A DNA stretch of 64,000 nt from Macrostomum lignano (lineage: Eukaryota). The position numbers and the translations under genes are program-made. Of the stretch, positions 14,717 through 49,647 are shown one piece after another. Position 1 is the stretch's first letter. Each line of letters opens with the position of its first letter. Location of the stretch: contig NIVC01000900.1 of the NCBI GenBank assembly GCA_002269645.1, positions 186,001 through 250,000 on the forward strand, given 5' to 3'. The notes beneath the pieces are model-generated. The model was not told the DNA's origin. It did not search any database and worked only from the letters and a program-made list of their open reading frames with translations.

Positions 14717-15048
14717 TCAGTCATTCACGCCTCTGCTAACCAACAGATTAACCGGATCAGCCAGCGACTGCAGCCATCGAGCGGTTTCCGAGTGGCTCAA
14801 GCTGCCGAGTCTCCGCCCGTTGGCCTCGACCAGCCGGTCGCCCGGACGCAGTCGGCCAAATGCCGGTCCATCGGGCGACACTCGCGACACAGCGACCCCG
14901 CCGCCTGCTCCGCCACCAATCATACTACTATTAGCAATGCTGAATCCCAGGCCCCCTGTAGATTTCTGCTTCCAATTTTGACGACACAACGACACCCAAA
15001 CCAGTTGGCGACCATTAAGAATAAATTTGGCCCTGTCCAGAGCGTCCA

Positions 15049-15079
<31 letters not shown>

Positions 15080-18000
15080 ACTACTGTAACTGTAGCTGTG
15101 ACGGCCTCGACGAGGCAATGGCGGAGGGGGCAGCGGAGGGGGCGGCGGAGGGGGCGGCGGAGGGTTGGCAGGCATTGGTAGGCCAGTTTTCCGATCGTAT
15201 ACGAGGCCGCTAGAAATTCCGCAGGAGGAGTCTTCGCCTGTTTGACTAGCCGCAGATGCGACACTTCTTCGATGCTGTTGATGCAGATTCGTTGCGGTTA
15301 GCAACAGAGGTACGGCTTGATAAGCAGGGAATTGCGGCAGGCTTCTGTTACTAATAAACGGGCGAAAAGCGCTCCGGTGACTTTCGCAGGCTATCGAGCC
15401 GTCAATATGGCCAATGGGATTTACTGCGGACGGCGACTGGGGCGCGCTCTGATTGGCTAAGAATAGCGGCACGCTTTGATGTTTAGGCGAAGGCGGCACG
15501 CTTTGATGTTTGGGCGAAGGCGGCACGCTTTGATGTTTGGCTGTAGGCGGCATCCTTTGATGATTGGGCGAAGGCGGCACGCTTTGATGATTGGAAGAAG
15601 GCGGCACGCTTTGATGATTGGAAGAAGGCGGCACGCTTTGATGATTGGAAGAAGGCGGCATCCTTTGATGATTGGGCGAAGGCGGCACGCTTTGATGATT
15701 GGGAGAAGGCGGCATCCTTTGATGATTGGGCGAAGGCGGCACGCTTTGATATTTGGGCGAAGGCGGCAAAATTTCATAAGTGGACGAACGCGGCGCGCTT
15801 TGATCTTTAATTAACGAATTCGGCACACTTTGATAAGATGACAAAAGCGGCGGTGCAAAACCTGAGTCAACGCTGTGTCTGACAATGGAACTATTCGATT
15901 CGTTTGATCGTATAGGGATTTCGTAAGCATCGCTTGGATCTGCTTGAGCGCACGAACAGGAGACCTGGGGATTTGCGATGGCCTCCTCTGAGGTGACACA
16001 GTTTGCGGCGGCGATATTGCAGTAAACTGACGGCTCGGCTGATGACTCCGGAGCGGATGATTCCTGCAGGTTTCAGTGGTGCGAAGGCACACTTCAGGGG
16101 CGATGATCATTAATCAGGGACACTTCAGAGGCAAATAAATTTTCATGGCCACTTCAGGGACACTTCATGGCCGATTCCTCAGGAATACTTCAGGGACGAT
16201 TTTTCAGAGATACTTCGTACTTCATAGGCGATTTTACTTCAGGGACACCTCAGAGGCAATTTCTCAGGGGCGATTTTTCAGGGGTGATTCTTTAGGGATG
16301 ATTCTTCAGGGTCAATTCCCCAGGAACGATGTTTCAGGGGCGATTCTTCAGGGGTGATTCTTCAGGGGCGATTCTTCAGGGGTGATTCTTCAGGGGTGAT
16401 TCTTTAGATTTGATTCTTCAGGGGTGATTTTTTAGAAGTGATTCTTCAGGGGAGATTCTTTAGGGGCGATTTTTTAGAAGTTATTCTACAGGGCGATTCT
16501 TCAGGGGCGATTCTTCAGGGGTAATTCCTAGAAGAGATCCTTAAGACACAGTTCAGTACAGAATCTTCATGGGTCAGTTCAGGTTCGAAAACGATTTGAA
16601 ATGACTCACCAGACTCTCCTTCTGCACAGAATCGTCATCCTGAAGATCGCCAGCTCTTCGCTGCTGCATCAACAGGCGCCGGCGAGGCCTTCGCTCCGGC
16701 AGATCCTTCGGCAAGGACTGGCCAGTGGACGGTTCCGATGCAGAGGCGAGGAAATGAACTACCGCCGCTCGACTTCTAGGCGGCGGCGTCGGAGGCTGGT
16801 GGGTCTTGTCGCTGCTATTCAGCATCAGCAGGGCTGCGGCTTTGCTAGCGACTACGTCGTCTCGAGTTTGAGTAGGCCGGTCTCCGGCCGACAGCTGAGG
16901 CAGCAGGTAGCAGGTGAGCACGCGGATTGGGCCGCAACGGCTGGCAATGTCCTCGGGCTGCAGGCGGGGCATTGGCTCCGACTGGTTGTCACTGAGCCAG
17001 AGTGCCTGACGAGTTCGAATTAGTTAGGAGAGTCTTTAGGAAAACACTTCAGGGGAGAGTCTTCAGGAAAACACTTCAGGGGAGAGTCTTCAGGAAAACA
17101 CTTCAGGGAGAGTCTTCAGGAAAACACTTCAGGGAGAGTCTTCAGGAAAACACTTCAGGGAGAGTCTTCAGGAAAACACTTCAGGGGAGAGTCGTTAGGG
17201 AAACACTTCAGGGAGAGTCTTCAGAGAAACTTCAGGGAAGAGTCTTCAGGGACACTTCAGGAGAGTCATTAGGGACACTTCAGGGTAGAGTCTTCAGGGA
17301 AACTACAGGAAAGAGTCTTCCGGGGAAACATTTCAGGGAAGAGTCTTCAGGGGCACTTCAGGGTAACACTTCAGGGCAGCATTTTTAGGAGAATTACTTC
17401 CGGGGAGATGCTAGAGGAACACTTCAAAGGAGACACTTCAGGGGAACACTCTTCAGGGACACTTCCGGCAAGACCGAACACCAACACCCAGATGGCTTTT
17501 AACTATAGAAACTTCCCCGCTAAAAAAGCACACACAAACCGAGCTCACCCTCAGCTGAGGCAGCCTGAGCATAGAGATCGGCAGGCACCGCAGATGATTG
17601 CCACTCAAATTCAGCACCCTCAGCGAGGCCAAGCGGCCCAGCTCGTCCGGCACCAACTTCAACCGGTTATCCCTGGCTGACAGCACAGCCAAAGATCGAC
17701 AAGTGCCAATTGCTTGAGGCAGTCGCTTCAATCGGTTGCTATCGCAATAAACCAGCTCAAGCTGATGCAGCCGACCCAAACCTGCCGGCAGTTCGTCTAA
17801 TCTATTTTTAGCAACATGCAGTTCGCACAGACTGAAACAGCGGAAACTGCCACCTCCGGAGCTGTTGCAGTTAAACTGCAATCGCGTTATTCGATTGTCG
17901 CCAATTCTTAGACACAGCAGACTGGCTGGCAAACTCGAATCCGCAAGCTCTGCTATTCGATTCGAGCTGGCGTCCAGATCTGTGAGCTGCGGACAGCCGC

Positions 18001-21000
18001 CCAGCTGGTTGGGCAGGAAGTCCAACCTATTAGACGATATGTCCAGCTGCTGCAGACTGGGGAACAGGACGGACTGCCTGTTGCCATGGGGAAGCGCAGC
18101 GGATGACAGCGCCAGTCTGCCGAGGCGGTTGTGGTCGACGCAGAGGTCGGTCAGACAGGGTAACAGAGATACGGACTCGGGCTGCGGGGCAATGATGAAC
18201 TGAGCACTTCAGACTGAGCACTCATGACTTCTGATGACCTGATGAGTACTCTCATGATTTCTGATGACCTGATGAGTACTCTCATGATTTCTGATGACCT
18301 GATGAGTACTCTCATGACCAATAATGAATGACCCGATGAGTACTCTCATGATTTCTGATGACCTGATGAGTACTCTCATGATTTCTGATGACCTGATGAG
18401 TACTCTCATGACCAATAATGATTGACCCGATGAGTACTCTCATGATTTCTGATGACCTGATGAGTACTCTCATGATTTCTGATGACCTGATGAGTACTCT
18501 CATGATTTCTGATGACCTGATGAGTACTCTCATGACCAATAATGAATGACCCGATGAGTACTCTCATGATTTCTGATGACCTGATGAGTACTCTCATGAT
18601 TTCTGATGACCTGATGAGTACTCTCATGACCAATAATGATTGACCCGATGAGTACTCTCATGATTTCTGATGATCTGATGAGTACTCTCATGACCAATAA
18701 TGAATGACCCGATGAGTACTCTCATGATTTCTGATGACCTGATGAGTACTCTCATGATTTCTGATGACCTGATAAGTACTCTCATGATTTCTGATGACCT
18801 GATGAGTACTCTCATGACCAATAATGAATGACCCGATGAGTACTCTCATGATTTCTGATGATCTGATGAGTACTCTCATGATTTCTGATGATCTGATGAG
18901 TACTCTCATGATTTCTGATGACCTGATGAGTACTCTCATGATTTCTGAGGACCTGATGAGTGATATCATGATTTCTGATGACCTGATGAGTACTCTCATG
19001 ATTTCTGATGATCTTATGAGAACTCTTATGATTTCTGATGACCTGATGAGTACTCTCATGACCAATAATGAATGACCTGATGAGTACTCTCATGACCAAT
19101 ATTGAATGACCTGATGAGTACTCTCATGACCAATAATAAATGACCTGATAAGTAATCTCATGACTACTAATGACCCGATGAGTACTCTTGTGACCAATAA
19201 TGCCAGCTGAAAAATTCATTACATGCTACATATACATCGAGCACTCACCAAGCTCTCCAGCTGATTTTCGCCAACATCGAGCCTCTCCAATCGATCCAAA
19301 CGCCCAACAGACTCTGGCAGCAGTTTCAAATTGTTATCACGAACTTCCAGAACGCACAGACTTGTTAAACTGAAAATATCAACGGTAAAGTCGCTTTGTT
19401 TACAAAATAAAAATTATATAAATTTGAAAGTTCGATTAACAAATCAAGCCCTGAAATCAAAGGATTTTCAAACGTTTAGGCCCTTAAGCGGCCCTTGAGC
19501 AAGACACTTAAGCGCTCAACTTTCTACTGACTCAAGTAGACTAAATAGAGTTTTTAAATAAATGCGAAATGCGATTCTAATTCATTAAGTGACGCAGGTG
19601 CGGCTGTATAACTCCCAGACTTTCTTAAGTCACATCTTTCTTACAATATTTTACCTGTGTTATCTGCAACAAGTCTGGGGCGACGCAAAAGACTCTGGAT
19701 ACCATTTTCATCATGCGAGAGATGTTTGCAATAGTTTCAGTGAACGACACGAATGTCGATGTCAGAGAGCTACTAAAAGCATACCGTAATGTGCTACTTA
19801 AAGTAATACTCTAAGAAAAGCCTATAGATAGTGACTCAGAACCCTACGTGGGATAAACGTTTGTTTGATCAAGGAACCGGATTTCAGCAGCTGTGTTAGC
19901 TTAACACCATATATGGTAATGGCGCTTACCGGATTTAGTTCTTGATAGTTGGCGTTAATAAGTTGATTGATTAAGTTTATGAGAGCCGTTTATTGTCGCG
20001 AACATTTGAGAGAAAGGCTTATTTTGTTTCCTAGGATACATTCCTAGAGGATCTACTGATTGATTTGAGTTATCCGTTACGTTTCGGACGTAACGAAGAA
20101 GACGCCCTTCAGGAGGACCGATTACAGAAACTCATAGAATTCAATTGTTCATTAGGGCGCACGTTCTACGAGTATTGTTAATTCCGAGCTCCGGGACCGT
20201 CAAGACTTCTGAGATAAAGTCAAGGACCACTGGAGACAACAAGTTACCGAAGCCAATCGTCACTACAAGACCAAGACGTCTAAAAGATACAAGAAGAAAA
20301 AGAGATATTTGATTTTGCATATACCTGCGCATTTTTTCCTTAGTGTCTAGAAGTGGGAGTTTTCAAGTGACTGACCACCACCCCTAAACTTGTTGTCTAT
20401 TTGTCTATTTCACCCTTTGTAGTCTCATTCTTTTAAAGCAATTAACCAGGACAATAAAAATAAAAAACAATAAGAATTCTGCAAAAACAACTCACTTGCC
20501 AATACAGTGCGGTAGTTTAACAATGGAGCACTGGTTTAATAGCAGATGCTTCAGATTGACCAAATCAGTCAACTCGTCTGGCAGGCTGAAAGCAACAACA
20601 AATAAACAAAATTTAGATTTAAACACAGGTAAAAAACCAAACTAAATTTTAATATTAATGTTTGGGCATGCATCTAATTTCGTATAGAGGTAAATAAAAA
20701 TCGCGGAAAAAATGTCATTAGTAGCAAAGCAAACAGCCAAGTGCATTTAAACAAAATCAAAAGCAATTTAAACAACATATAAACAGGAATATTCGTATTC
20801 ATGCTTTTTATTCTCCGAGACAAAGCTTCCGGTTACCAAAAAAGGCGGGGGACAACGGTGCAAACAACATCACATGGGTACTTACTGATGGTTAATTTCA
20901 ATTTTTTCTGGAAAAAATTAAACAATTTCAAAAACAAATTTCAATTTCAAATCTGATTCCCCAGTCTGACATCATATCTGATTCCCCAGTCCGACATCAG

Positions 21001-32476: not shown

Positions 32477-34167
32477 TTATCGGTTCCATTTTTTCCTGTC
32501 GCACCAACGGCCGAATCCCTGAAGCTGAAGGCGATTGAGTTGCCCTTGAACAATTGCAAAGCATTCTAACCATCCCTTGATGAAGTTGTAGTTGGCATTT
32601 GGTCTCACTCCGAATCGTAGGCATTGAAAATTTTCAGCACTGCAGGTGTTGAGATCAAGGTTGTGACTTCGCTTTTTCATTTGAGTCACATTTCCATGCG
32701 CGTACAAGTTGCATTCGGAACTTTGCAGCGCAAAGCCAAGGTTTATTTCAGCAGCCTCATTTAAAGGACTCAAAGAAAACGCACCAGGGCTGCTGACGTA
32801 GTTATAGTAGCCTTCTAAGTTGGGTGGATGGTAACGGAAAACAGCACGGGTGTCTCTGCGTACCAGCATAGCATTGCCAACACGTTGAGCAGTGAAACAT
32901 TTTGTAAACAGATTGCACAGTGTTGCTGAAAAATGAAAATGAAAGAAAACATAAGGCTATAAGTTATGGTGATAGTAGAATTAAGGATTGACATATGCAG
33001 CTATTGAAACTTACTTCTTGTGTAAAAATAGTCTGGCTCGAATGAACAACGTCACGTTGGGCTCGGGCACAAACAGGTCCTCGATTCCGTCGGCCGTGCT
33101 CACACCGATGAAGGAGCCAGACTCTCCCGTCACGAACGCGCCCGCAGACCGGTTGAGCACAGCCGACACGAGCACCGGAGTGTGCGGATTCCGGTGCACA
33201 GGCGCCAAATTGAACGAGCCCACACGGAAGTGGTACAGAATCCGCAGCGAGCTCACCGCGATGCTGCTGGGCAGGTCGGTCGTGTGAGCTGCAATTCGAT
33301 AACGATGTAACGATGTGAGCACACCGGTGCCTGCATGGACTCGCCAGTGAATGAGCTGGGCACAGCTGCAGTCACGCACTGCATGGGCACAGCTGCAGTC
33401 ACTCACTGCATGGGCACAGCTGCAGTCACGCACTGCATGGGCACAGCTGCAGTCGCACACTGCATGGGCAGAGCTGCAGTCACGCACTGCATGGGCACAG
33501 CTGCAGTCACTCACTGCATGGGCACAGCTGCAGTCACACACTGCATGGGCACAGCTGCAGTCACACACTGCATGGGCACAGCTGCAGTCACACACTGCAT
33601 GGGCACAGCTGCAGTCACGCACTGCATAGGCACAGCTGCAGTCACGCACTGCATAGGCACAGCTGCAGTCACGCACTGCATGGGCACAGCTGCAGTCACA
33701 CACTGCATGGGCACAGCTGCAGTCACACACTGCATGGGCACAGCTGCAATGCACACACTCATGCATGCTCAGGCCTGACAGAATGACTTCTCACCCTGCT
33801 CGAACTTTGCCAGCCTCCGCCTGTTCACAAACGAGTCGCACTGGCCGTGTCCGTGCAGCCATGCAGTGAGGAAGGCCTCGGCAGTCGCCAGCAGACACCA
33901 GCGATGCTCAGCGACCATGCTGGCAGCTGCAGAGCTCTCTGTCGTGTGGCAGCTCAGCACGCAGACAGCGATGCTGCGGTCAGGCAGTTGATGAGGCTCC
34001 AGCTTCCACACTCCATCAGTGGGCAGGTCGTCAGGCGGACAGGCGACCAGTCTGTCGTAGTCGGTGAGCCCCACGATGGACGCTGACGAGACGGCGATGA
34101 GGCAGCAGAGGAGCACGAGAGTAAAAACTGTTTTGCGGCTTCTATAGATATCAGTTGGTTTCAGCAT
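32477..34167 (-). pseudogene. PAN/Apple + ConA/LamG-like secreted protein, copy A (apparent frameshift; pseudogene or assembly error)
   Basis: Exons 34167-33795, 33288-33015 and 32925-32477. Signal peptide, Cys-patterned PAN-like domain and ConA/LamG-like C-terminus (FIKGWLECFAIVQGQL). The phase-2 junction frame (NTVQSVYKMFHCS) differs from the frame of the rest of exon 3 (VGNAMLVRR...). One PAN Cys is Ser. Confidence 0.7.
33355..33755. repeat. 27-nt minisatellite in intron 1 of copy A
   Basis: Unit CTGCAGTCACACACTGCATGGGCACAG, about 15 copies. Confidence 0.97.
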
Positions 34168-34788
34168 GTTAGATTTTTACCTGAAACTGACTTGTCGCCT
34201 GAAACCAGCGCTGAAAAACAACTTTAATATCAGCTACTTGTAGGTTGCGACAGATTTTATATATGCCAAATCTTTAAGACTCTGATAGGCTCTATTCCTT
34301 CTCGACTAGTCGTGTAAGCCACTGTGTAATGGACTTCATCAAACCTTCCTTGCCACCAATTGGAGAATAGAAATGCAAGTCAGTTGTTCGTCTTAAAGTG
34401 CATTTAGAAGAATTTAGTTGCATAGATCGGCTTAGTTATCAACTTGACTGATAACTTGATGTGGGAACCTTGATGTGCAAAAGGGACAAAGCCTAATTTT
34501 ATTTGTCTATGGTCGCAAAGTCAGCGTTCGTGGCTGGCTGATTTTCCTCAAGAGTTCAACCATAGACAGCTTGACAGGCAAGCTACAATTGTGTCTCGCG
34601 CAGAAACTTTGTTTTAGTATAGAGACCTATTTTCCCATAGAAATCTAACACACTCCATGATGTTGGCCATAGACAATAGGTTAGCCGGAAATTTCTGTTG
34701 CAGAATCAAGCCTTAAGCGAAACTGACTGACAAATTTGCTAACGGACTAACTTGTTTCTTCGCATCATACCAAGTCAGCAAGTAAAAA

Positions 34789-37700
34789 ATGACTCAACTT
34801 ATTGTTCTCAGACTAGTAAATAAGATTTTCATCTGCTTACTATTACTAAATTGTACAGCAACCGCTACAAAGGAGGTCAAAATTTCCGACGAACGTGCAT
34901 TAAATGCTATGCTGGCTTTCTTTGCCCTTGAGCGCCAAAGAATTGACGTGCCTTTGTCGGACCTCCCAGACGGGCATTCAGTGGAGGACCGTGTGCTAAG
35001 TGGCTTGGCCTATGTGCCCTTAGCTGACCAGCCAATTCACGCCCTGTACGCTAGAGAAGGATTTCCAGACTTAAAGCGCATGTTCAGTGCCCCAGTTGTT
35101 CGTGACGGGTCAAGAACTTATCCAGCGATTCCCAGTCTGGACGCCAAGCGGAACAAAATCTACTTTCGGGTCTTTGGTAAGTTTTCCCAAAATTATTGAT
35201 TACGATACTTAAGTATATACATACTCACGGGTAGGGTTGTAGACGCAACACTATCAGGGGCCGATTTCATGAAGCAAGTACAAGTGACAAGTACAAACGG
35301 CCACTAAAAGTTGCGGCTGCATTACGACACCAGGACGTAACTCTCCCCGTTTGAGTGCGCCTTGTTCTTGTCTAAGGGTCTATCTGCTTCTAGCGATTCT
35401 TTCGTTTTTCATCCATCACGGTTTGGAATTCGTTGGTAGCTTTGAAAGTTGCATATTTTCTTCCTAGTAACGAATATTAGCGATTAAAAGTTCATTCAAT
35501 TCAACAACCAATTTCTAGGTAATTTGCTAACGAAGGTACCTAAAATTACAAGTTCATTGAAAAAGTATTGTCACATCAACGAAGGTAAGTAAATTTCTAC
35601 CGGGGTAATATATACCTATTTGCTTGTTTGCTGTGATTGAACTATTTACCAGATGGCCGATGAAATCTAAACTGATTGCGTGCTTGTTTCAGTTGAGTCA
35701 CAGCGAATCTAGTTTGTGCATCAGTTTGAGTCACATTGAATCCAGTGTGAGTCGTGCCCAAGGGATAGACTAGTGTGTGTGTAACAACAAACAACTTCAG
35801 GTCACTCATGTACCTTTGCTGCCGGCGACGCAATCGTATCCTGTGAATTAGTGTCGCATTCGAAGTCGCCAACTGAATTGATCGACATGTTCGGATATCT
35901 GGCCTTGCGTCTCGTTGGGGTGAGACAAACTGGTTAATCTGTCTGTCTTTAAAGTAGCATTTTACATTCTAACTAAAGTGCTTTACACCAGACTAATTGA
36001 CTCTCTTACGCTCGTATATCAAAATATTCCATTTTTGGGGATGGAAGTACCCGCAGTACCTTCAGTACCTTTGGGACCTTCAAGACCTTCGAGACCTTCC
36101 GGACCTTCGGGACCTTCGGGACCTTCGGGACCTTCAGGACCCTCGGGACCTTCGGGACCTTCAGGAGCCTCAGGACCCTTGATTAAGTGCATGCTTAAAA
36201 TTGTCTATAAAACGTAAGAGCATATTATATTTTATATGCAACACACTATGTAGTCTGCGAACGACGTCTACATGAGATTTTACGGCGTAAAAGTCTACCA
36301 ACCTGCCAAGAAGTTTAAAAGATTCGTTTTCACCTACGAAGACGAGCGCAATCACCCAAGGATTCTCTGGCCAGCCTGGGTTAATCTCTACTTGTTCTTC
36401 CGAAACAGCTACCAGGTCTGCCTGGAAGCTAAAAGATGCGGGTATAAAACTGACGATGACTGCGCGAACTTTTTCAGCAACGTTAACCAATTATCGCTGA
36501 CGTACGCTTATTTTGTGTGCCGAATTTTGTCAGGCAGCGCTTCGGACAGTCTGTGCCCTAATATTTGCCGGTTCGATCCTTGTGCCACCATACATCATGC
36601 TATTAAAGGTGAATTACTGGGGCTTCTTTATCACAGACACCCGAATACTTTACCAGATACCCGAATACTTTACCAGACACGGGAATACATTACCAGACAC
36701 CCGAATACTTTACCAGACACCCGAATACTTTACCAGACATGGGAATACTTTATCAGACACCCGAATACTTTACCACACACCCGAATAGTTTACCAGACAC
36801 GGGAATACTTTATCAGACACCCGAATACTTTACCAGACACGGGAATACTTTATCAGACACCCGAATACTTTACCAGACACGGGAATACTTTATCAGGCAC
36901 CCGAATACTTTACCAGACATGGTAATACTTTATCAGACACCCGAATACTTTACCACACACCCGAATAGTTTACCAGACACGGGAATACTTTATCAGACAC
37001 CCGAATAGTTTACCAGACACGGGAATACACTACCAGACACCCGAATAGTTTACCAGACACGGGAATACTTTACCAGACACGGGAATACACTACCAGACAC
37101 GGGAATACTCTACCAGACACGGGAATACTCTACCAGACACGGGAATACTCTACCAGACACGGGAATACTCTACCAGACACGGGAATACTCTACCAGACAC
37201 GGGAATACTCTACCAGACACGGGAATACTTTACTTATAGATACCTGCCATTTATCATGCGCGCTCTCTCTGCAGGCACCTGCTATCCAATCAGCTTGAAA
37301 ATACACCGGCATGATTATTTCTGCTTTTGCGAAGAGGGCTACAGGTGGGAGGCAAAAGACACAAGAGATTCCATTGGAGTCTGGCGAACTGGAAGGTGCG
37401 ACCATTCTGTATTTGAAGCATAGAAGAATGACAATCCTCTAGACTCGTAACAACAAAGATAACAAAGACTTATTTAACCCGTTCAGTAGACAGTAAGTAG
37501 ATTTATTTAGCTGCATTTTAAAAATGTTTATTTTTCAGGTGCACTTCCATGAAGCCCATGTCATCAGACACGGAGGCCTGTACCCCACTAGAGATGGAAA
37601 CGTTTTGCAATCGAGACGGCACTGCATCTTGCACAGTTATGCGTGCTACTTACAACCGTAGGGCCGTATGCATTTGCAAAACGGGCTATGGAAATCTGGA

Positions 37701-40700
37701 CTGTAGCTATAAGTTCAGAGACGCCTGCGATGCACACGAATTTAAGGGCCTATTGCTCTGCAGGAGCCACGAAAAAGTCGGCAAATGCAAACCCTATGGG
37801 ACAGGTCCAATTTCAGGACCGAAGCTCAATCTAAGGTAGACTTAATGAATATTTTGTTGACAGCTGAGTGTCTTGTTAAATACCTGGGTGTCTAGTTAAG
37901 CCACAGAGTACCACAGAATGCTCAGCCGACTAGTAAAATCGAATGTGTATCTAATTAAAACACCATAGATGCAACGTTTCCTGTGATGATTTATAATTGT
38001 CGTAACTACTCGTAATATATAATATCAAAGTAGCAGAGTTGACTGCTTGTAGAGCAGTCGATTCATATTGTTTTCATACAAAATATTAAAGCAGTACAGT
38101 TTACTTTTTCCTGAGCAAACAACGTGAACGATTGTCAGAAAACTTAAGTGGCAAGCTCTTGTGGTGCTTATAAATTAATAATGGATTCTACTGTATACCA
38201 AACAATTTAACCTAAGATCCAAGGACGACTTAAGTAGAAGGACGGGAAACCTCGTTTCTTAGAAAAGTTTTGAAGGCACTTTTTCCCGAAAAAATACACT
38301 ACGGAGATAGGAAGTTTTCATTTTTTCAGCACAAAAATTGTTATTGCGTTTGATAGGAGGCAGATCCAGTGTTCATCTTTTGATATGTTGTGCCTTTTTT
38401 ATTGCTCTATCGATATTTACAAAGCTCCTCGTTCAGAAAATTAGGATTCTATGCTAATTTTTGATTCTACGTATATTTCCTGTATCTAAAAATCACAAAA
38501 ATGCATGACACAGCTCCAATATTTGGTTTTATGAACCTATTTTATCATCTCTGTTACAAATATTTGCTACACAGTCGGGTAAGAATGATAAAAAAGACTC
38601 ATGAAGCTAAAGAGCCGAGCCGTGGCATTCTAATGTATTTCAAGCACAAGACACGCGAAAATATACGTAGAATAAAAAATTAACATGAATCCTAATTTTC
38701 TGAACGAAAAGCTTTATAAATATCGATAGAGCAATAAAAAAGGCACAACATATCAAAAGATGAACACTGGATCTGCCTCCTATCAAACGCAATAACAATT
38801 TTTGTGCTGAAAAAATGAAAACTTCCTATCTCCGTAGTGTATTTTTTCGGGAAAAAGTGCCTTCAAAACTTTTCTAAGAAACGAGGTTTCCCGTCCTTCT
38901 ACTTAAGTCGTCCTTGCTAAGATCACGTGGCTCTTTGCTGATCTATAATTATTCAAAAATACAAAACAATTAAAATCACAAGCCCATGCCAGTGATATAG
39001 TCTATGGTGATTCTTCTCCCTACTACTTTCCCACAGCTTCACAGGAAGAGTAGTACAAAGCGAAAGGAATTCAAAAAATTCTCATTGAGATTTTTTCTTC
39101 GTTCTGGGGTATTCTGTGGACTAAGCAGTAACTGAATAATTTTTTGTTGTCTAAATGGTTTTAGGCTTTGATAATGCTTTGATAATGGATAAATAATCAG
39201 CGGTCCCAGTGCGTGATAACGATTGTCTGGCGATCGCCGGCAGGCGCGAGCTTTAGACAAATCGTTGTCACGTGCTGCGACCGCTGATTCTTTACATTGT
39301 TTTTCTATTTGACGATCCTACAGACAATGCATTTTTGTAGTAATGGATTGTTCTGCATTAAAAATGTGAATAATGATCGCCAAATTGCTAAACAATGACA
39401 ATTAACTATGCCCAAATGAAGACAAATATTTGTGTGCGTTGGTGCATTGGTTTCAGTGCGTTGGCTTCTAGATAAACGTTCGCGCAACACTTATTGCGTT
39501 GTTGCAGTTATTACTTCTTTGATTTTAATCCCGACATAGGGCTTATCAGTGTCAGTGCTTCTCCTCCAAGTACATTCGATGGGTCGGAAAAACAGGCGAA
39601 GAATGCCGGCAGTGGATACCCAGCCTGTGGCACGACAGAAGCCAGCGCTGCGGCTACGACTTCTTACTAGCCAGACCTGACATGCTGGTCAAGCACTGCA
39701 ACCAGATCGGCTGCACCGAGGCCTCGATTCGCAGCTACATAGCCGACTTGGAGGCAGCTGGTCACGCCTGCGGCGGTCTCGGCTCCTGCAGTCCCGGTCC
39801 ATTGAACATGAGCACCGATATGCGGATGTCGGCCTATTGCCAGTGCAAGCTCGGCAAGGCTGGTAAACTTTGCGAAAGCGTTTACGCCTCTTATGTTGAG
39901 TGGACGCCATGGACCGTGTGTTACGATAAAGGACTTGGTGGGTTGTTTTCTTGTTTTATTACTACTAAGTCAGCTTTTTGCATTAGCTGTTTTGTTGGAG
40001 CAAACGCATCAGTGCTCAGATGGGATCCGCGGTGATGTCAGAAAGTCGCAATGAAAATTCCTAGCTCAGACATTTATCGAATCAAATCACTGAAATCCCA
40101 ACTGTCGGGTCAAAATATGACTTTCCAGGTTTCAGCCATCAAGGATGTTTGACCGCTACAATGCCCAGTCTTCACTTTCTAGCTATTTTTTTATTAGAGG
40201 CAGAGGTGTTGTGTGCACCCTGGCGCACTTTAAGCGACATAGGCACACAACCGGCGAGAGGCATTGCTGCCCATTCCGCCGACTCCCCTGAGCAGACATA
40301 CAAGCGCGCGGATACGTACGCAGGCACACACTCACACAGGAGTGTACAGCGGCCCTGATTTTCTGATTTTTGTTTTCGTCCGCAAGTCTCAAATGAATGC
40401 AGCCTGTCGTGGCTCTGTTCAACCCACCTCACAAACTTGACATTGCATTGAAAGAGTAACAAAAACAATTTTCAGTGCTAGCCAAGCAGAGAGGTCGGCT
40501 CCGATTCAGGCACTGCCAAGAATTGCATCAGAAACAAGTCGGCAGCCCGCCGCTCTGCGTCAATGGCAAAACTGAACAACTGCCCTGTCCAGATGTTGCC
40601 GAGCATCTGGAGGAGACTTTGACTCATTCGGACTATGGAGTGACATCGCAGGCGGTCATTTCAATGTGGCGAATCGTTGAACTATTGATCCTGACCGATC

Positions 40701-40819
40701 TACTGCTGGTTGGAATGCTTGCAGGAGCCCTGATCTACCACAGGATCGTGCTGGGCGGGTGGGGAGTTGAAGAGCCCAAAGCTGAAAAAGAAGCAGATTC
40801 TGCACCGCAGAAAGCTTGA
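34789..40819 (+). CDS. type-I membrane protein with signal peptide, several EGF-like modules, one TSP1-like repeat and a C-terminal TM helix
   Basis: Firm exons are 34789-35176, 36254-36608, 37275-37395, 37539-37835, 39540-39937 and 40476-40819, phase-consistent from 36254 on. Motifs: YFCFCEEGYRW, CICKTGYGNLDC, YQCQC, CQCKLGKAGKLCE, YVEWTPWTVC...RLRFRHC...C.NG...QLPC, and TM IVELLILTDLLLVGMLAGALIY. The linkage 35177-36253 is unresolved. Confidence 0.85.
36060..36180 (+). repeat. 9-nt repeat, possibly coding (GPS)n
   Basis: Unit GGACCTTCG/GGACCTTCA, flanked by acceptor-like cccgcag| (36056) and donor |gtaaga (36214). Confidence 0.8.
36635..37230. repeat. 20-nt minisatellite in an intron of the EGF/TSP1 gene
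   Basis: Units ACCAGACACCCGAATACTTT and ACCAGACACGGGAATACTTT. Confidence 0.96.
38220..38916. mobile_element. 697-bp non-autonomous DNA transposon with 230-bp TIRs (P-superfamily-like)
   Basis: TIRs 38220-38449 and 38687-38916, with about 3 mismatches. Termini CAAGG...CCTTG. Perfect 8-bp TSD CTAAGATC (38212-38219, 38917-38924). Confidence 0.9.
40181..40360 (+). repeat. ~185-bp dispersed element, copy 1 (last intron of the EGF/TSP1 gene)
   Basis: Reverse-complement match to 43336-43527, roughly 85% identical by eye. Confidence 0.88.
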
Positions 40820-41294
40820 GACTTAATTTGATGAAGCTTGATGTCAAATTTATATCTGATCGATATCTCATCAATATCTGATCGATTTCTAACCAATATC
40901 TAATCGATATCTATCCAATAACGAAGCAACAGTTACCTGTTCTCAATCTCTAATTAATCTATTAGATCATTTGTTGCTAGTTTTTCATTGTTTACATAAC
41001 CGCGAATACCGCTCACATGGAGTAGACAGATAGAAAACTTCTAACTAATGCTACAGTCTAACTGTTTAAGCAGAAAGTCGAATAAAAACGAGTTAGTTTA
41101 TTGATCGCGTTTTGTTTTATTTGGCACCTGGCCTAAGCAGGAGAGTCCTAATTGAAATTAAGCTAGTTTTCGTGTGCGTTTGATATATTTTTATGCTGTC
41201 TACTATTATTAGTCTGATAGGATTGCGAGTAATAGAAGCAAAAAGTAAATTTTCTCAAGTCCTTGGCACTAAAATTATAATATTCGTAGTTTTT

Positions 41295-44789
<3,495 letters not shown>

Positions 44790-45473
44790 TGCTACTCAAA
44801 CCGGACCAGTTCGGAACTAAAGCCACGTCAGCTTAATCTTAAAAGCAAGAACTTCTCAACGAGCATTGTTTGAAATAGTCGTCCACTTAAGAAGCATACT
44901 AGTAGAAGTCATTCAGCTATGAATTTCAGCTGCTTGAAACACTGCGCGTTCAGCATTGCCTGCTCTGTAGCCTCTGCATTGAAGTTGCAGAAACTTCTGG
45001 TGACGATTGGGGGCGCAATGTGCAGTTCTGAGCAGTCTGAGTCACTGTGGCCCGATAATTTGCTTGTCGGACTGCTTTGAGAAGAGAATACGCTCTTGCT
45101 GAGGCTACATGGGCAAATACAAAGCCCAAGTATGACCAACCGGCATTGGGCAGAGAGGCGTCGGGTGTTCTGCATGCATTTGCCTCTTTTCCTGTCAATT
45201 GTTAATATTTTAATCAAAATAACAGTAATCTTACTCAGCAAAATCAGTCAAAATCAGTCCTGGGTGGGTAACCAATACCTGAGATTTGTCCACCAATCAG
45301 ATTTTCCGGGTTTACCAATTCCAATGCAAGGGCAATACATTCACCCTATAAGTATCTCCGCAAGTTAAAGCGGTATCGAGTTCTGATGGCCAAGATCGAG
45401 TTCCACTCCCCCTGATGAATTTCAAAAACAATAAACTTTCACAGCTTACTGAATTTTTTTAGCTCTTGCCAGC

Positions 45474-47433
45474 ATGCTAGCTTTGTTGAGCACATTTGGG
45501 CAATTATTGTGCCTCATTGCCATCGCCTCGGCGTCCATCGTGGGGCTCACCGACTACGACAGACTGGTCGCCTGTCCGTCAGACGACCTACCCGCTGATG
45601 GAGTGCGGAAGCTGGAGCTTCATCAACTGCCTGAACGCAGCATCGCTGGCTGCGTGCTGAGCTGCCACACGACAGAGAGCTGTGCAGCTGCCAGCATGGT
45701 CGCTGAGCATCGCTGGTGTCTGCTGGCGACTGCCGAGGCCTTCCTCACTGCATGGCTGCACGGACACGGCCAGTGCGACTCGTTTGTGAACAGGCGGAGG
45801 CTGGCAAAGTTCCAGCAGGGTGAGGAGTCACGAGTGAATGCAGCTGTGCCCATGCAGTGCGTGACTGCAGCTGTGCCCATGCAGTGTGTGACTGCAGCTG
45901 TGCCCATGCAGTGTGTGACTGCAGCTGTGCCCATGCAGTGCGTGACTGCAGCTGTGCCCATGCAGTGTGTGACTGCAGCTGTGCCCATGCAGTGTGTGAC
46001 TGCAGCTGTGCCCATGCAGTGCGTGACTGCAGCTGTGCCCATGCAGTGTGTGACCGCAGTTGTGCCCATGCAGTGCGTAACTGCAGCTGTACCCATGCAG
46101 TGTGTGACTGCAGCTGTACCCATGCAGTGTGTGACTGCAGCTGTACCCAGTTCACTCACTGGCGAGTTCATCCATGCACCGATGTGCTCATATCGTTACA
46201 TCGTTATCGAATTGCAGCTCACACGACCGACCTGCCCAGCAGCATCGCGGTGAGCTCGCTGCGGATTCTGTACCACTTCCGTGTGGGCTCGTTCAACCTG
46301 GCGCCTGTGCACCGGAATCCGCACACTCCGGTGCTCGTGTCGGCTGTGCTCAACCGGTCTGCGGGCGCGTTCGTGACGGGAGAGTCTGGCTCCTTCATCG
46401 GTGTGAGCACGGCCGACGGAATCGAGGACCTGTTTGTGCCCGAGCCCAACGTGACCGTGTTCATGCGAGCTAAGTTCGACTTCAACGGAGAGTGAGTTCC
46501 AAGGAAAGGCATGTTTGAGTGTCATTCTGAACATCCCAGTGAAACTGTGTTTTTTACAAAAAATCTGTAGCTGGGTTTTTGGACAAAAAGGATTCAAGTG
46601 AATTTTCTTATTTGTGTTTCTTATACTTGTTATTGCTGTGCAACTGACTAAGAAACTTGTATATAATTACAGAGAAATTTACAACTACTTTTACTACTTA
46701 TTCAACTGCGAAGACAACGCATATGGTAATTACCTGGCTATGAAAAACGATGAACGGCTCAAGATGAGCTACCAGCAATCGAATTCGACAGCTTACTGGT
46801 ACTACGAATATCTAAGCAAACCAAACAGCTTTCCAACCAGCACCTCGGGCGCCTATCGCGGCTTTGGATTCGTTCTGGATGCAAGCGTCACTGAGGCGAA
46901 GTTTTACAACTCCGCTTCTGGCGGAACCTCAACCGTGGAAGTCGAGGCTTCCACTTCTGATTCCGGAATCAAAGAGGCCAATTTCAATTGCATGAGGTTC
47001 GTCTTTATGCACCAGTAAATCTTCTATCTGTGTAGCTAATTGCAAAGACAGAATGAAAAATCACAGGGCAGTCTTAACCTACACATATATACATGTATAC
47101 AATTAACCATCATAGAGTTTAGTGATTTTGTATCGTATTAACGACATATCTACGAAGGTATTAGGTACGGAAAGGCAAAGGATCCAACTACAAAATGATC
47201 TTGGTTTGTCACATTTAGAACTATTTTTTAAATATTGGATATTATTAATACGGCATTATTATAATCGTAGCACTTTCCAAATTCAACATCCCAGAATCGG
47301 AGTGTTCGAACCGGACGCAATCGGGCGCTGCCTTCGAGGCTTCGTCGAGTGCTTCGCCATCTTCAGCGGTCAGCTCAGTGCCGCCCAGTTCCAGCAGCTG
47401 AACGCCTGGTGCGCCAACAAGAATTCTGCTTGA
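45474..47433 (+). CDS. PAN/Apple + ConA/LamG-like secreted protein, copy B, 360 aa, 4 exons
   Basis: Exons 45474-45819, 46218-46491, 46673-46996 and 47295-47433; GT-AG and phase-consistent. Signal peptide, PAN-like Cys pattern, C-terminus LRGFVECFAIFSGQLSAAQFQQL. Confidence 0.9.
45838..46148. repeat. 27-nt minisatellite in intron 1 of copy B (same family as 33355-33755, inverted)
   Basis: Unit CTGCAGCTGTGCCCATGCAGTGTGTGA, about 11.5 copies. Confidence 0.97.
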
Positions 47434-47917: not shown

Positions 47918-49126
<1,209 letters not shown>

Positions 49127-49647
49127 AGATAGCGAGAAAGAGCGAGCGAAGCGAGCTCTTTCGAGCTTGCTTGCCGCAGCCAGTCAAGCTGAAAGCACGC
49201 ACACAAGATCACCGGAAACGATTAAGGCAGCTGGAAAGCCAATGGGCGCGGTAAGCGCTTTTATACAGAGGAACTACCTGCTGGAACCAGCCATGCCGAA
49301 CGAAAATCAGACTACTCAAGTAGTGCAAAAGAGTACGTGCAACTACCGAGAAATCTAATTTTCGTAACCGCTCCGGTGCAGGTCCTGGCTATAGATAGAA
49401 GATAGGTACAGCGTATACATTAGCTGACACGAATTTTTTAATTAACATTTATATTGTTGACAATAGAATATATATTTATGCTGATAATATCCTTTTTTGT
49501 CAGTGTAATATATCGTATAATATAGAAAGTGACAGACATTTGTATCAGAGTAGCTCATATTGTTATTCAATTTCAAGTCAAGCTATAAGCAAGGCTTTTA
49601 ATTTTTTTCGAATTTTATTCTGCTATAACAGTACCTAGAAAGTTCCT

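Follow-up and report, generated by a model that had tools for sequence, protein, structure and literature searches.

We examined a 64,000-nucleotide (nt) stretch of the genome of the flatworm Macrostomum lignano (contig NIVC01000900.1, positions 186,001 to 250,000, from assembly GCA_002269645.1, which we take to be Mlig_3_7). We call this whole stretch the window, and positions given without a contig name refer to it. The window contains two related genes that we call A, on the minus strand (32477-34167), and B, on the plus strand (45474-47433). The two genes are inverted and 11.4 kb apart. Their first kilobase is nearly identical, and it is joined in each gene to a second half that looks unrelated to that of the other. 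This pair is part of a cluster, A(-) B(+) C(-), that we found three times in the assembly with order and orientation kept: on the contig of the window (C900) and on two homeologous contigs, C346 and C211. The flanks of the three versions differ by 1-5%. The third member on C900, of type C and on the minus strand, lies about 3 kb past the end of the window (C900:253013-253661, locus L049). Its exon 1 has an open frame of only 90 codons, without an in-frame start codon or signal peptide.

Gene B is intact. Its four exons (45474-45819, 46218-46491, 46673-46996 and 47295-47433) are separated by GT-AG introns and give a spliced open reading frame (ORF) predicted to encode a secreted protein of 360 amino acids (aa) with a hydrophobic, signal-like N-terminus. 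The acceptor of exon 4 was set at 47295, 24 nt downstream of its first placement, according to the database model P0001 and an alignment of the family. The P0001 model itself extends the B-type gene into unrelated sequence. In the C211 homeolog of B (C211:654902, L036:1900) ATT replaces the ATG start codon, and the gene is otherwise without insertions or deletions.

Gene A, by contrast, is probably a pseudogene. It has three exons (34167-33795, 33288-33015 and a single 3' exon at 32925-32477). Exon 2 ends in phase 2 and the sole long ORF of exon 3 requires phase 1; examining the sites by hand, we found no canonical alternative donor or acceptor that restores the frame. This phase defect is common to all three homeologs of A. 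The copy on C346 has also lost 16 nt of exon 2 and gained 7 nt in exon 3, and the copy on C211 is split in exon 1 by a 6.6-kb insertion (C211:637646-644304, loci L034/L035) that is presumably a transposable element. Both database models of A products, P0005 and P0006, are truncated. From these sequences, A is best read as a probable pseudogene in all three versions, yielding at most a truncated product. Thus, the A-B pair does not appear to be two working recognition proteins, and in this respect the first-pass annotation, which had considered a diversification mechanism for a secreted recognition-protein family, did not hold.

A repeat search and blastn placed inverted arms of 637 nt (33036-33672/45834-46470, 96% identity) and 321 nt (33784-34104/45510-45830, 95% identity) in the two genes, with only a tandem array of 27-nt units between them whose copy number differs between A and B. 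Using sensitive blastn on 2.9 kb around each copy, we obtained one collinear match between 34104-33036 of A and 45510-46470 of B at 95-98% identity, and no DNA similarity past either end of it. This match defines a module, on the minus strand in A (33036-34104) and on the plus strand in B (45510-46470), whose limits were the same by repeat search and blastn. In B it runs from codon 13 in exon 1 across the whole of intron 1 to nt 253 in exon 2. Its 5' limit in the comparison of A with B is at nt 37 of the B coding sequence, inside the signal peptide, and its 3' limit is seven codons short of the exon 2 donor, at nt 253 of 274. These limits agree with the first-pass annotation, which had described near-identity from late in the signal peptide through exon 2, an abrupt loss of identity a few codons before the exon 2 donor, and a difference at the start of the signal peptide.

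Within the module 20 of 563 coding nt differ between A and B, compared with about 56% of nt in the codon-aligned 3' halves (Fisher p = 4e-84). Synonymous divergence (dS) is 0.029 and nonsynonymous divergence (dN) 0.013 in the core, whereas in the 3' half dN is 0.83, dS is saturated and not computable, and amino-acid identity is 32%. Divergence is thus not uniform across the exons. The A-specific 3' part (32477-33035, minus strand) is made up of the final 21 nt of exon 2, intron 2 and the single 3' exon; at the DNA level it resembles only the homeologs of A (95-98%). The B-specific 3' part (46471-47433, plus strand) takes in the final 21 nt of exon 2 together with introns 2 and 3 and exons 3 and 4. 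It too has DNA similarity to its homeologs alone, those of B on C346 and C211 (97-99%), and its amino-acid identity to other types is 22-32%. Introns 2 and 3, the 3' exons and the flanks have no DNA similarity between A and B or the other types. Gene B has one extra intron, and the number of introns varies by type.

The module is not confined to these two genes. We searched the whole assembly (764 Mb, 5269 contigs) at the DNA level with the exon-2 core and found exactly 21 copies on eight contigs, 92-100% identical to the module of B. The sequences 3' of exon 2 in these copies fall into six clusters (A, B, C, D/D2, E and F) with no DNA similarity between clusters, and by this measure the family has at least six 3' types. 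The genome in the Mlig_3_7 assembly is made up of three paralogous subgenomes, S, L1 and L2 (PMC10733133). Each type has about three copies, matching these subgenomes (PMC10733133). Between E-type and D-type genes we also observed solitary exon-1 fragments (nt 105-346; C211:344130-344393, C3437:27913-28176 and C3895:31307-31568) for which the genome-wide search gave no accompanying exon-2 core and which look like relics of broken copies. Some public gene models of the family are chimeric; P0002 is a repeat-rich 'Cadherin domain-containing' protein fused to a D-type 5' module.

Two more distant paralogs are intact and intronless (L050:1690-2655, plus strand, 322 aa; L051:1423-2436, minus strand, 338 aa). 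They have a signal peptide, a cysteine-rich N-terminal domain and a Laminin_G_3-like domain and are 18-33% identical to B over their whole length, indicating that the family has both intron-less and intron-bearing lineages. A deep alignment of the family could not be built, as a full HMMER scan of 1.84 billion representatives gave only nine matches. The family is thus lineage-restricted. The close protein relatives with a named source are UniRef entries of Macrostomum lignano only, and from its sequences we consider the family to be Macrostomum-specific and its products predicted to be secreted. The literature that we searched contained nothing specific on this family or on gene conversion in Macrostomum.

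Intron 1 lies at the center of the module. It is a GT-AG intron, 506 nt long in A and 398 nt long in B, that holds the 27-nt minisatellite; the '27-mer intron' of the first-pass annotation was therefore right about the repeat and not about the length of the intron. Tandem Repeats Finder placed 11.7 copies of the unit GTGACTGCAGCTGTGCCCATGCAGTGT at 45834-46149 (plus strand) in B and 15.1 copies at 33357-33763 (minus strand) in A. Intron 1 carries this unit in each of the six types, with 0-44 copies and a count that differs between homeologs; in type C there are 2 copies on C900 compared with 39 and 44 in its homeologs. Both the minisatellite and the non-repeat flanks of intron 1 are common to all types. 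In a genome search with a 35-nt pattern, the matches listed to the family minisatellite were all at family loci. One extra array of this family-specific minisatellite (C211:349759-350252) lies about 1.4 kb downstream of a D-type gene, outside the catalogued copies. We considered a coding role for intron 1, the minisatellite being open in frame with exon 1, and rejected it. The intron lengths span all three phases across copies, and the database model P0002 is spliced at the same sites. The module is rich in guanine plus cytosine (GC), with 60-63% GC in exons, 74-76% at third codon positions (GC3) and 57-59% in intron 1, compared with 29-34% in the other introns and a GC3 of 46-63% in the 3' halves.

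To describe the protein we used profiles and structure prediction. Pfam gave no match to B at E <= 1. The first-pass annotation had named PAN and ConA/LamG domains (concanavalin A-like and laminin G-like, respectively), and these names are plausible with profile support that stays below threshold. UniRef names the relative P0001 an 'Apple domain-containing protein' (Macrostomum lignano), and the distant paralogs matched PAN_1 (E = 0.032) and PAN_3 (E = 0.16) below the cut-off. The distant paralog L051 matched Laminin_G_3 (PF13385) over profile positions 4-150 of 151 with 26.6 bits, against a cut-off of 27.6 (E = 7.4e-6); the same profile was matched by L050 (E = 0.019) and by one member of family alignment A1 (7.6e-4). 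XRCC4 matches in a PDB profile search (E >= 0.29) were rejected as chance-level.

An AlphaFold2 model of B built from the nine-sequence alignment had a predicted template modeling (TM) score of 0.62. In this model the N-terminal domain (aa 25-115) is alpha/beta with block-mean predicted local distance difference test (pLDDT) values of 63-91, and the β-rich remainder is poorly resolved, with pLDDT of 33-50 over most of the domain. A single-sequence prediction was discarded (mean pLDDT 34.6). The top Foldseek matches to the model were ConA-like lectin subdomains (E 4e-6 to 2e-4, with TM scores of only 0.3-0.4), namely the N-terminal half of clostridial neurotoxin binding domains, an accessory domain of a GH43 arabinanase and the lectin domain of a trans-sialidase. 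We take these as fold-level resemblance in a predicted model, with no toxin-like activity implied. A plausible architecture for the family is thus a signal peptide, a PAN/Apple-like domain and a ConA-like or LamG-like β-sandwich, with sub-threshold domain calls, and its function may be lectin-like. The ConA-like domain starts inside exon 2, which encodes its first strands. The 3' limit of the module therefore cuts through the fold and not at a domain junction. This argues against a PAN module having been shuffled onto different ConA/LamG halves, as had been proposed, and so do the graded and type-specific shoulders of the module described below.

Comparison of all copies separated the two halves of the genes by age. 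Between types, the 3' halves have amino-acid identities of 22-32%, dN of 0.8-1.1 and saturated dS; between homeologs of one type the same halves have 97-99% identity, dN of 0.004-0.012 and dS of 0.03-0.05. In the core module dN and dS are 0.018 and 0.046 between types, and 0.008 and 0.025 within types. B and the E type have 99% amino-acid identity in the exon-2 core and 23% in the 3' half, whereas B and the distant paralog P0007 have 42% and 23%, respectively. Judged by these sequences, the types appear to be as old as the distant paralogs in their 3' halves, and their 5' modules appear to be about as young as the split of the subgenomes.

We further examined how divergence between types changes along the module in 35-nt windows. 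Over roughly 170 nt on each side of intron 1 it amounts to about 1%. In more detail, between nt 211 of exon 1 and nt 140 of exon 2 it is about 1-2.7%, near the within-type level; most windows within about 140 nt of intron 1 have 0.9-1.7% and the rest no more than 2.7%. Further out it increases to 3-9%, and then to 10-23% in exon 1 nt 1-175, and it is 36% in the last 29 nt of exon 2. Shoulders of intermediate divergence are found on both sides (dS of 0.18 in exon 1 nt 79-171; 7-9% in exon 2 nt 176-245). The 5' limit is at nt 37 for A, 55 for D, 73 for E and 79 for C, and lies inside the 5' untranslated region for B, D2 and F; D2 and F share 400 nt more upstream. In all types the 3' limit is at nt 248-274 of exon 2, within about 30 nt of the donor.

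Based on these results, we think it likely that this family is a case of partial concerted evolution by non-allelic gene conversion, acting family-wide in a neopolyploid flatworm. The types would be ancient, and one segment, made up of the second half of exon 1, intron 1 with its minisatellite and the first approximately 245 nt of exon 2, would have been homogenised across all types and loci by ectopic gene conversion. The gradient centered on intron 1 suggests that exchanges would start at or near the minisatellite and extend over tracts of varying length. They would stop where the divergence between paralogs is too high for heteroduplex formation, and this would keep the outer boundaries sharp; in both respects the minisatellite as initiator and the cause of the boundaries are what we infer from the pattern. 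Most of the homogenisation would date from about the time when the three subgenomes split or from slightly before it, with a few short exchanges later. Gene A would be a decaying pseudogene whose 5' module still looks pristine. The first-pass annotation had attributed the mosaic to gene conversion or ectopic recombination between A and B. The class of mechanism fits the homogenised synonymous sites and intron 1, and the restriction to A and B does not, as the module is in all 21 copies.

Several observations weigh against this reading. The core tree still resolves types C, D and F as monophyletic, with SH-aLRT branch support of 98-100%, and core dS is about twice as high between types as within them. 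The pattern could therefore come largely from one burst before the subgenome split and not from continuing conversion. That all 3' limits are within about 30 nt of the exon-2 donor is also what a single recombination point would give. The exchanges are read from the sequences of one species alone, with changes unpolarised, and single-base frame defects in some copies could be long-read assembly errors. The GC richness of the module is compatible with GC-biased conversion without proving it, and this case is weak since the GC-rich minisatellite itself largely accounts for the high GC content of intron 1. Finally, the window has more than 25 minisatellite arrays, so that finding one at the center of the tract is not remarkable in itself.

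The alternative that fares best is such a single burst, in which ectopic or unequal recombination close to the exon-2 donor would have placed a 5' module (exon 1, intron 1 and exon 2) on already existing, divergent 3' halves shortly before the split, with little or no conversion since. The common position of the 3' limits, the monophyly of C, D and F, and the core dS of 0.046 between types against 0.025 within types are all as it predicts. Against it, the shoulders are graded and the 5' limits differ from type to type. Moreover, the three F homeologs have three structurally different ends of intron 1, and identical ends are found across types (F on C691 and D2 on C211; F on C3410 and E on C3437; A on C346 and B on C211). 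The 457-nt core has 15 minor alleles that recur in different types and are polymorphic within a type, compared with 19 that are fixed by type. The core tree does not resolve B, D2 or E as monophyletic, and the types all lie within 1-3% of each other. These shared intron-end haplotypes and shared polymorphisms suggest that most homogenisation took place before or with the subgenome split and that some short exchanges followed it. We therefore regard the single burst as unlikely.

We also asked whether the A-B pair is special, since a recent tract restricted to A and B and favored by their inverted arrangement, possibly with inversion of the spacer, would fit two inverted copies 11.4 kb apart that are 95-98% identical over about 1 kb. 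The exon 2 of B is nearest to the D-type copies on C3895, C3437 and C211 (at 348k), and A ranks only 13th of the 21 copies; the 12 copies ahead of it are mostly on other contigs. The A copies of the other contigs are equally near to B in the core, with 5 differences in 410 nt for the copy on C211 and 10 in 441 for the copy on C346, compared with 9 in 457 for the copy in the window. The exon 1 sequences of A and B cluster with those of their respective homeologs. Divergence between types was 2.92% for pairs on the same contig and 3.19% for pairs on different contigs (p = 0.21). Thus, comparison of same-contig with different-contig pairs gave no effect of adjacency on exchange. The flanks of the spacer are collinear in C900, C346 and C211, so that the inversion of 34.1-45.5 kb considered earlier was not seen in these three assembled haplotypes. 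Together these results do not bear out a recent exchange tied to the inverted A-B arrangement, and we strongly doubt that it explains the module.

Selection alone, with genes of one age in which purifying selection froze the 5' half and diversifying selection split the 3' half, is scarcely tenable. In its favor, the 5' part of the distant paralogs is somewhat better kept relative to B (21-42% amino-acid identity) than the 3' half (18-25%). In the module, however, synonymous sites are conserved like replacement sites (core dN/dS 0.4 with dS of 0.046) and intron 1 is homogenised too, which is not the result of selection on the protein. The saturated dS of the 3' halves, the lack of similarity in introns 2 and 3 and the 3' flanks, and the differing intron number by type also speak against genes of one age. 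Lastly, although the assembly is repeat-rich and from a polyploid genome, a collapsed or mis-joined repeat is very unlikely and we give this reading almost no weight, because identical mosaic junctions occur in the independently assembled C900, C346 and C211, those of other types occur on five more contigs, and the modules of A and B differ at 4-5% of their sites and hold different numbers of minisatellite copies.

Partial concerted evolution by gene conversion is a known process, and this family is a fresh example of it with no new mechanism. In the human fetal globin genes HBG1 and HBG2, a (TG)n run in intron 2 marks the boundary of a conversion tract. Like that tract, the one described here is bounded, is near-identical in intron and synonymous sites, has flanks that are far older, and has an intronic repeat at a key position. 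It differs in involving 21 copies of six types at several loci and in three subgenomes, in having a 27-nt minisatellite at the center and not the edge of the tract, and in an unconverted half that is saturated in dS and not mildly diverged. CYP21A2 and CYP21A1P are a gene and pseudogene that undergo conversion. As in that pair, the defective A keeps a module near-identical to that of intact paralogs, suggesting that pseudogene and genes remain potential conversion partners; unlike in that pair, we saw no defect of A transferred to an intact copy.

A conserved leader joined to a hypervariable mature part is known from the conotoxin superfamilies and from some invertebrate lectin and immune families, and is usually ascribed to selection on duplicates of similar age. 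The family described here resembles them in having constant N-terminal and divergent C-terminal parts and in being lineage-specific, clustered and predicted to be secreted. Here, however, the intron and synonymous sites show a young constant part and an old variable part, and the boundary is inside a fold and not between leader and mature peptide. MS32 and CEB1 are human minisatellite-associated hot spots of meiotic conversion at which allelic events were measured in sperm. Like these, the family has a GC-rich minisatellite, at 0-44 copies, at the peak of a gradient of exchange, whereas the events here would be non-allelic and are read from sequence alone. The S, L1 and L2 subgenomes of M. lignano (PMC10733133) account for the approximately three copies per type, the 1-5% divergence and the conserved synteny. 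They do not account for the identity between types, which requires exchange between paralogs.

In the spacer between A and B (34168-45473), which keeps its orientation in the homeologous contigs, there are fragments of unrelated genes and several minisatellites. Coding-looking pieces at 35924-40035 include collagen-like G-P-S triplets (36040-36183) and cysteine-rich ORFs that resemble epidermal growth factor domains (37522-37839 and 39529-40035, plus strand). An inverted repeat of 230 nt in the spacer (38220-38449/38687-38916; 99% complementary, with a loop of 237 nt) is predicted to be a hairpin-forming element resembling a miniature inverted-repeat transposable element. The minisatellite arrays of the window (1-64000) have periods of 12-35 nt. 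A perfect 15-mer is repeated 29 times at 41503-41943, with one frame that reads (PEAPA)n, and simple repeats are found at 42472-42891, (TAG)140, and 47918-49132, (ATAG)304. An EF-hand-like ORF lies on the minus strand beside the (TAG)n run, within the ORF at 42471-43241. A telomere-like 12-nt satellite (AAACCCTAGCAT, about 45 copies, 44059-44605) is located about 870 nt 5' of the gene B start codon, and its alignment identity with its C211 homeolog is only 80-90%. Elsewhere in the window, exons at 14717-18208 (minus strand) encode leucine-rich repeats (LRR_8, 2e-18) and a PDZ domain (5e-9) in what looks like a LAP/Scribble-type gene.

These results have practical consequences for work on M. 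lignano. The 5' modules, near-identical in 21 copies, will be misleading in the mapping of reads, in calls of orthology and in the design of probes for RNA interference and in situ hybridization, for which the 3' halves are better targets, and database gene models of the family (P0001, P0002, P0005 and P0006) are fragmented or chimeric. For the biology of the family, one could imagine a recognition system with constant and variable parts, in which a conversion hot spot seeded by the minisatellite would keep the N-terminal module, with its PAN-like domain and the opening strands of the lectin fold, uniform throughout the genome, the ancient and mutually unalignable lectin halves would be shielded from it, and pseudogenes such as A would serve as partners. 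We consider this speculative and rather improbable; if true, it would be a germ-line analog, in a flatworm, of the organisation of constant and variable regions. More generally, the family would provide a clean and quantifiable case of partial concerted evolution, with a more than 30-fold difference in dS within one gene and a gradient centered on an intronic minisatellite, in which the three subgenome copies of each paralog may serve as an internal clock for dating the exchanges.

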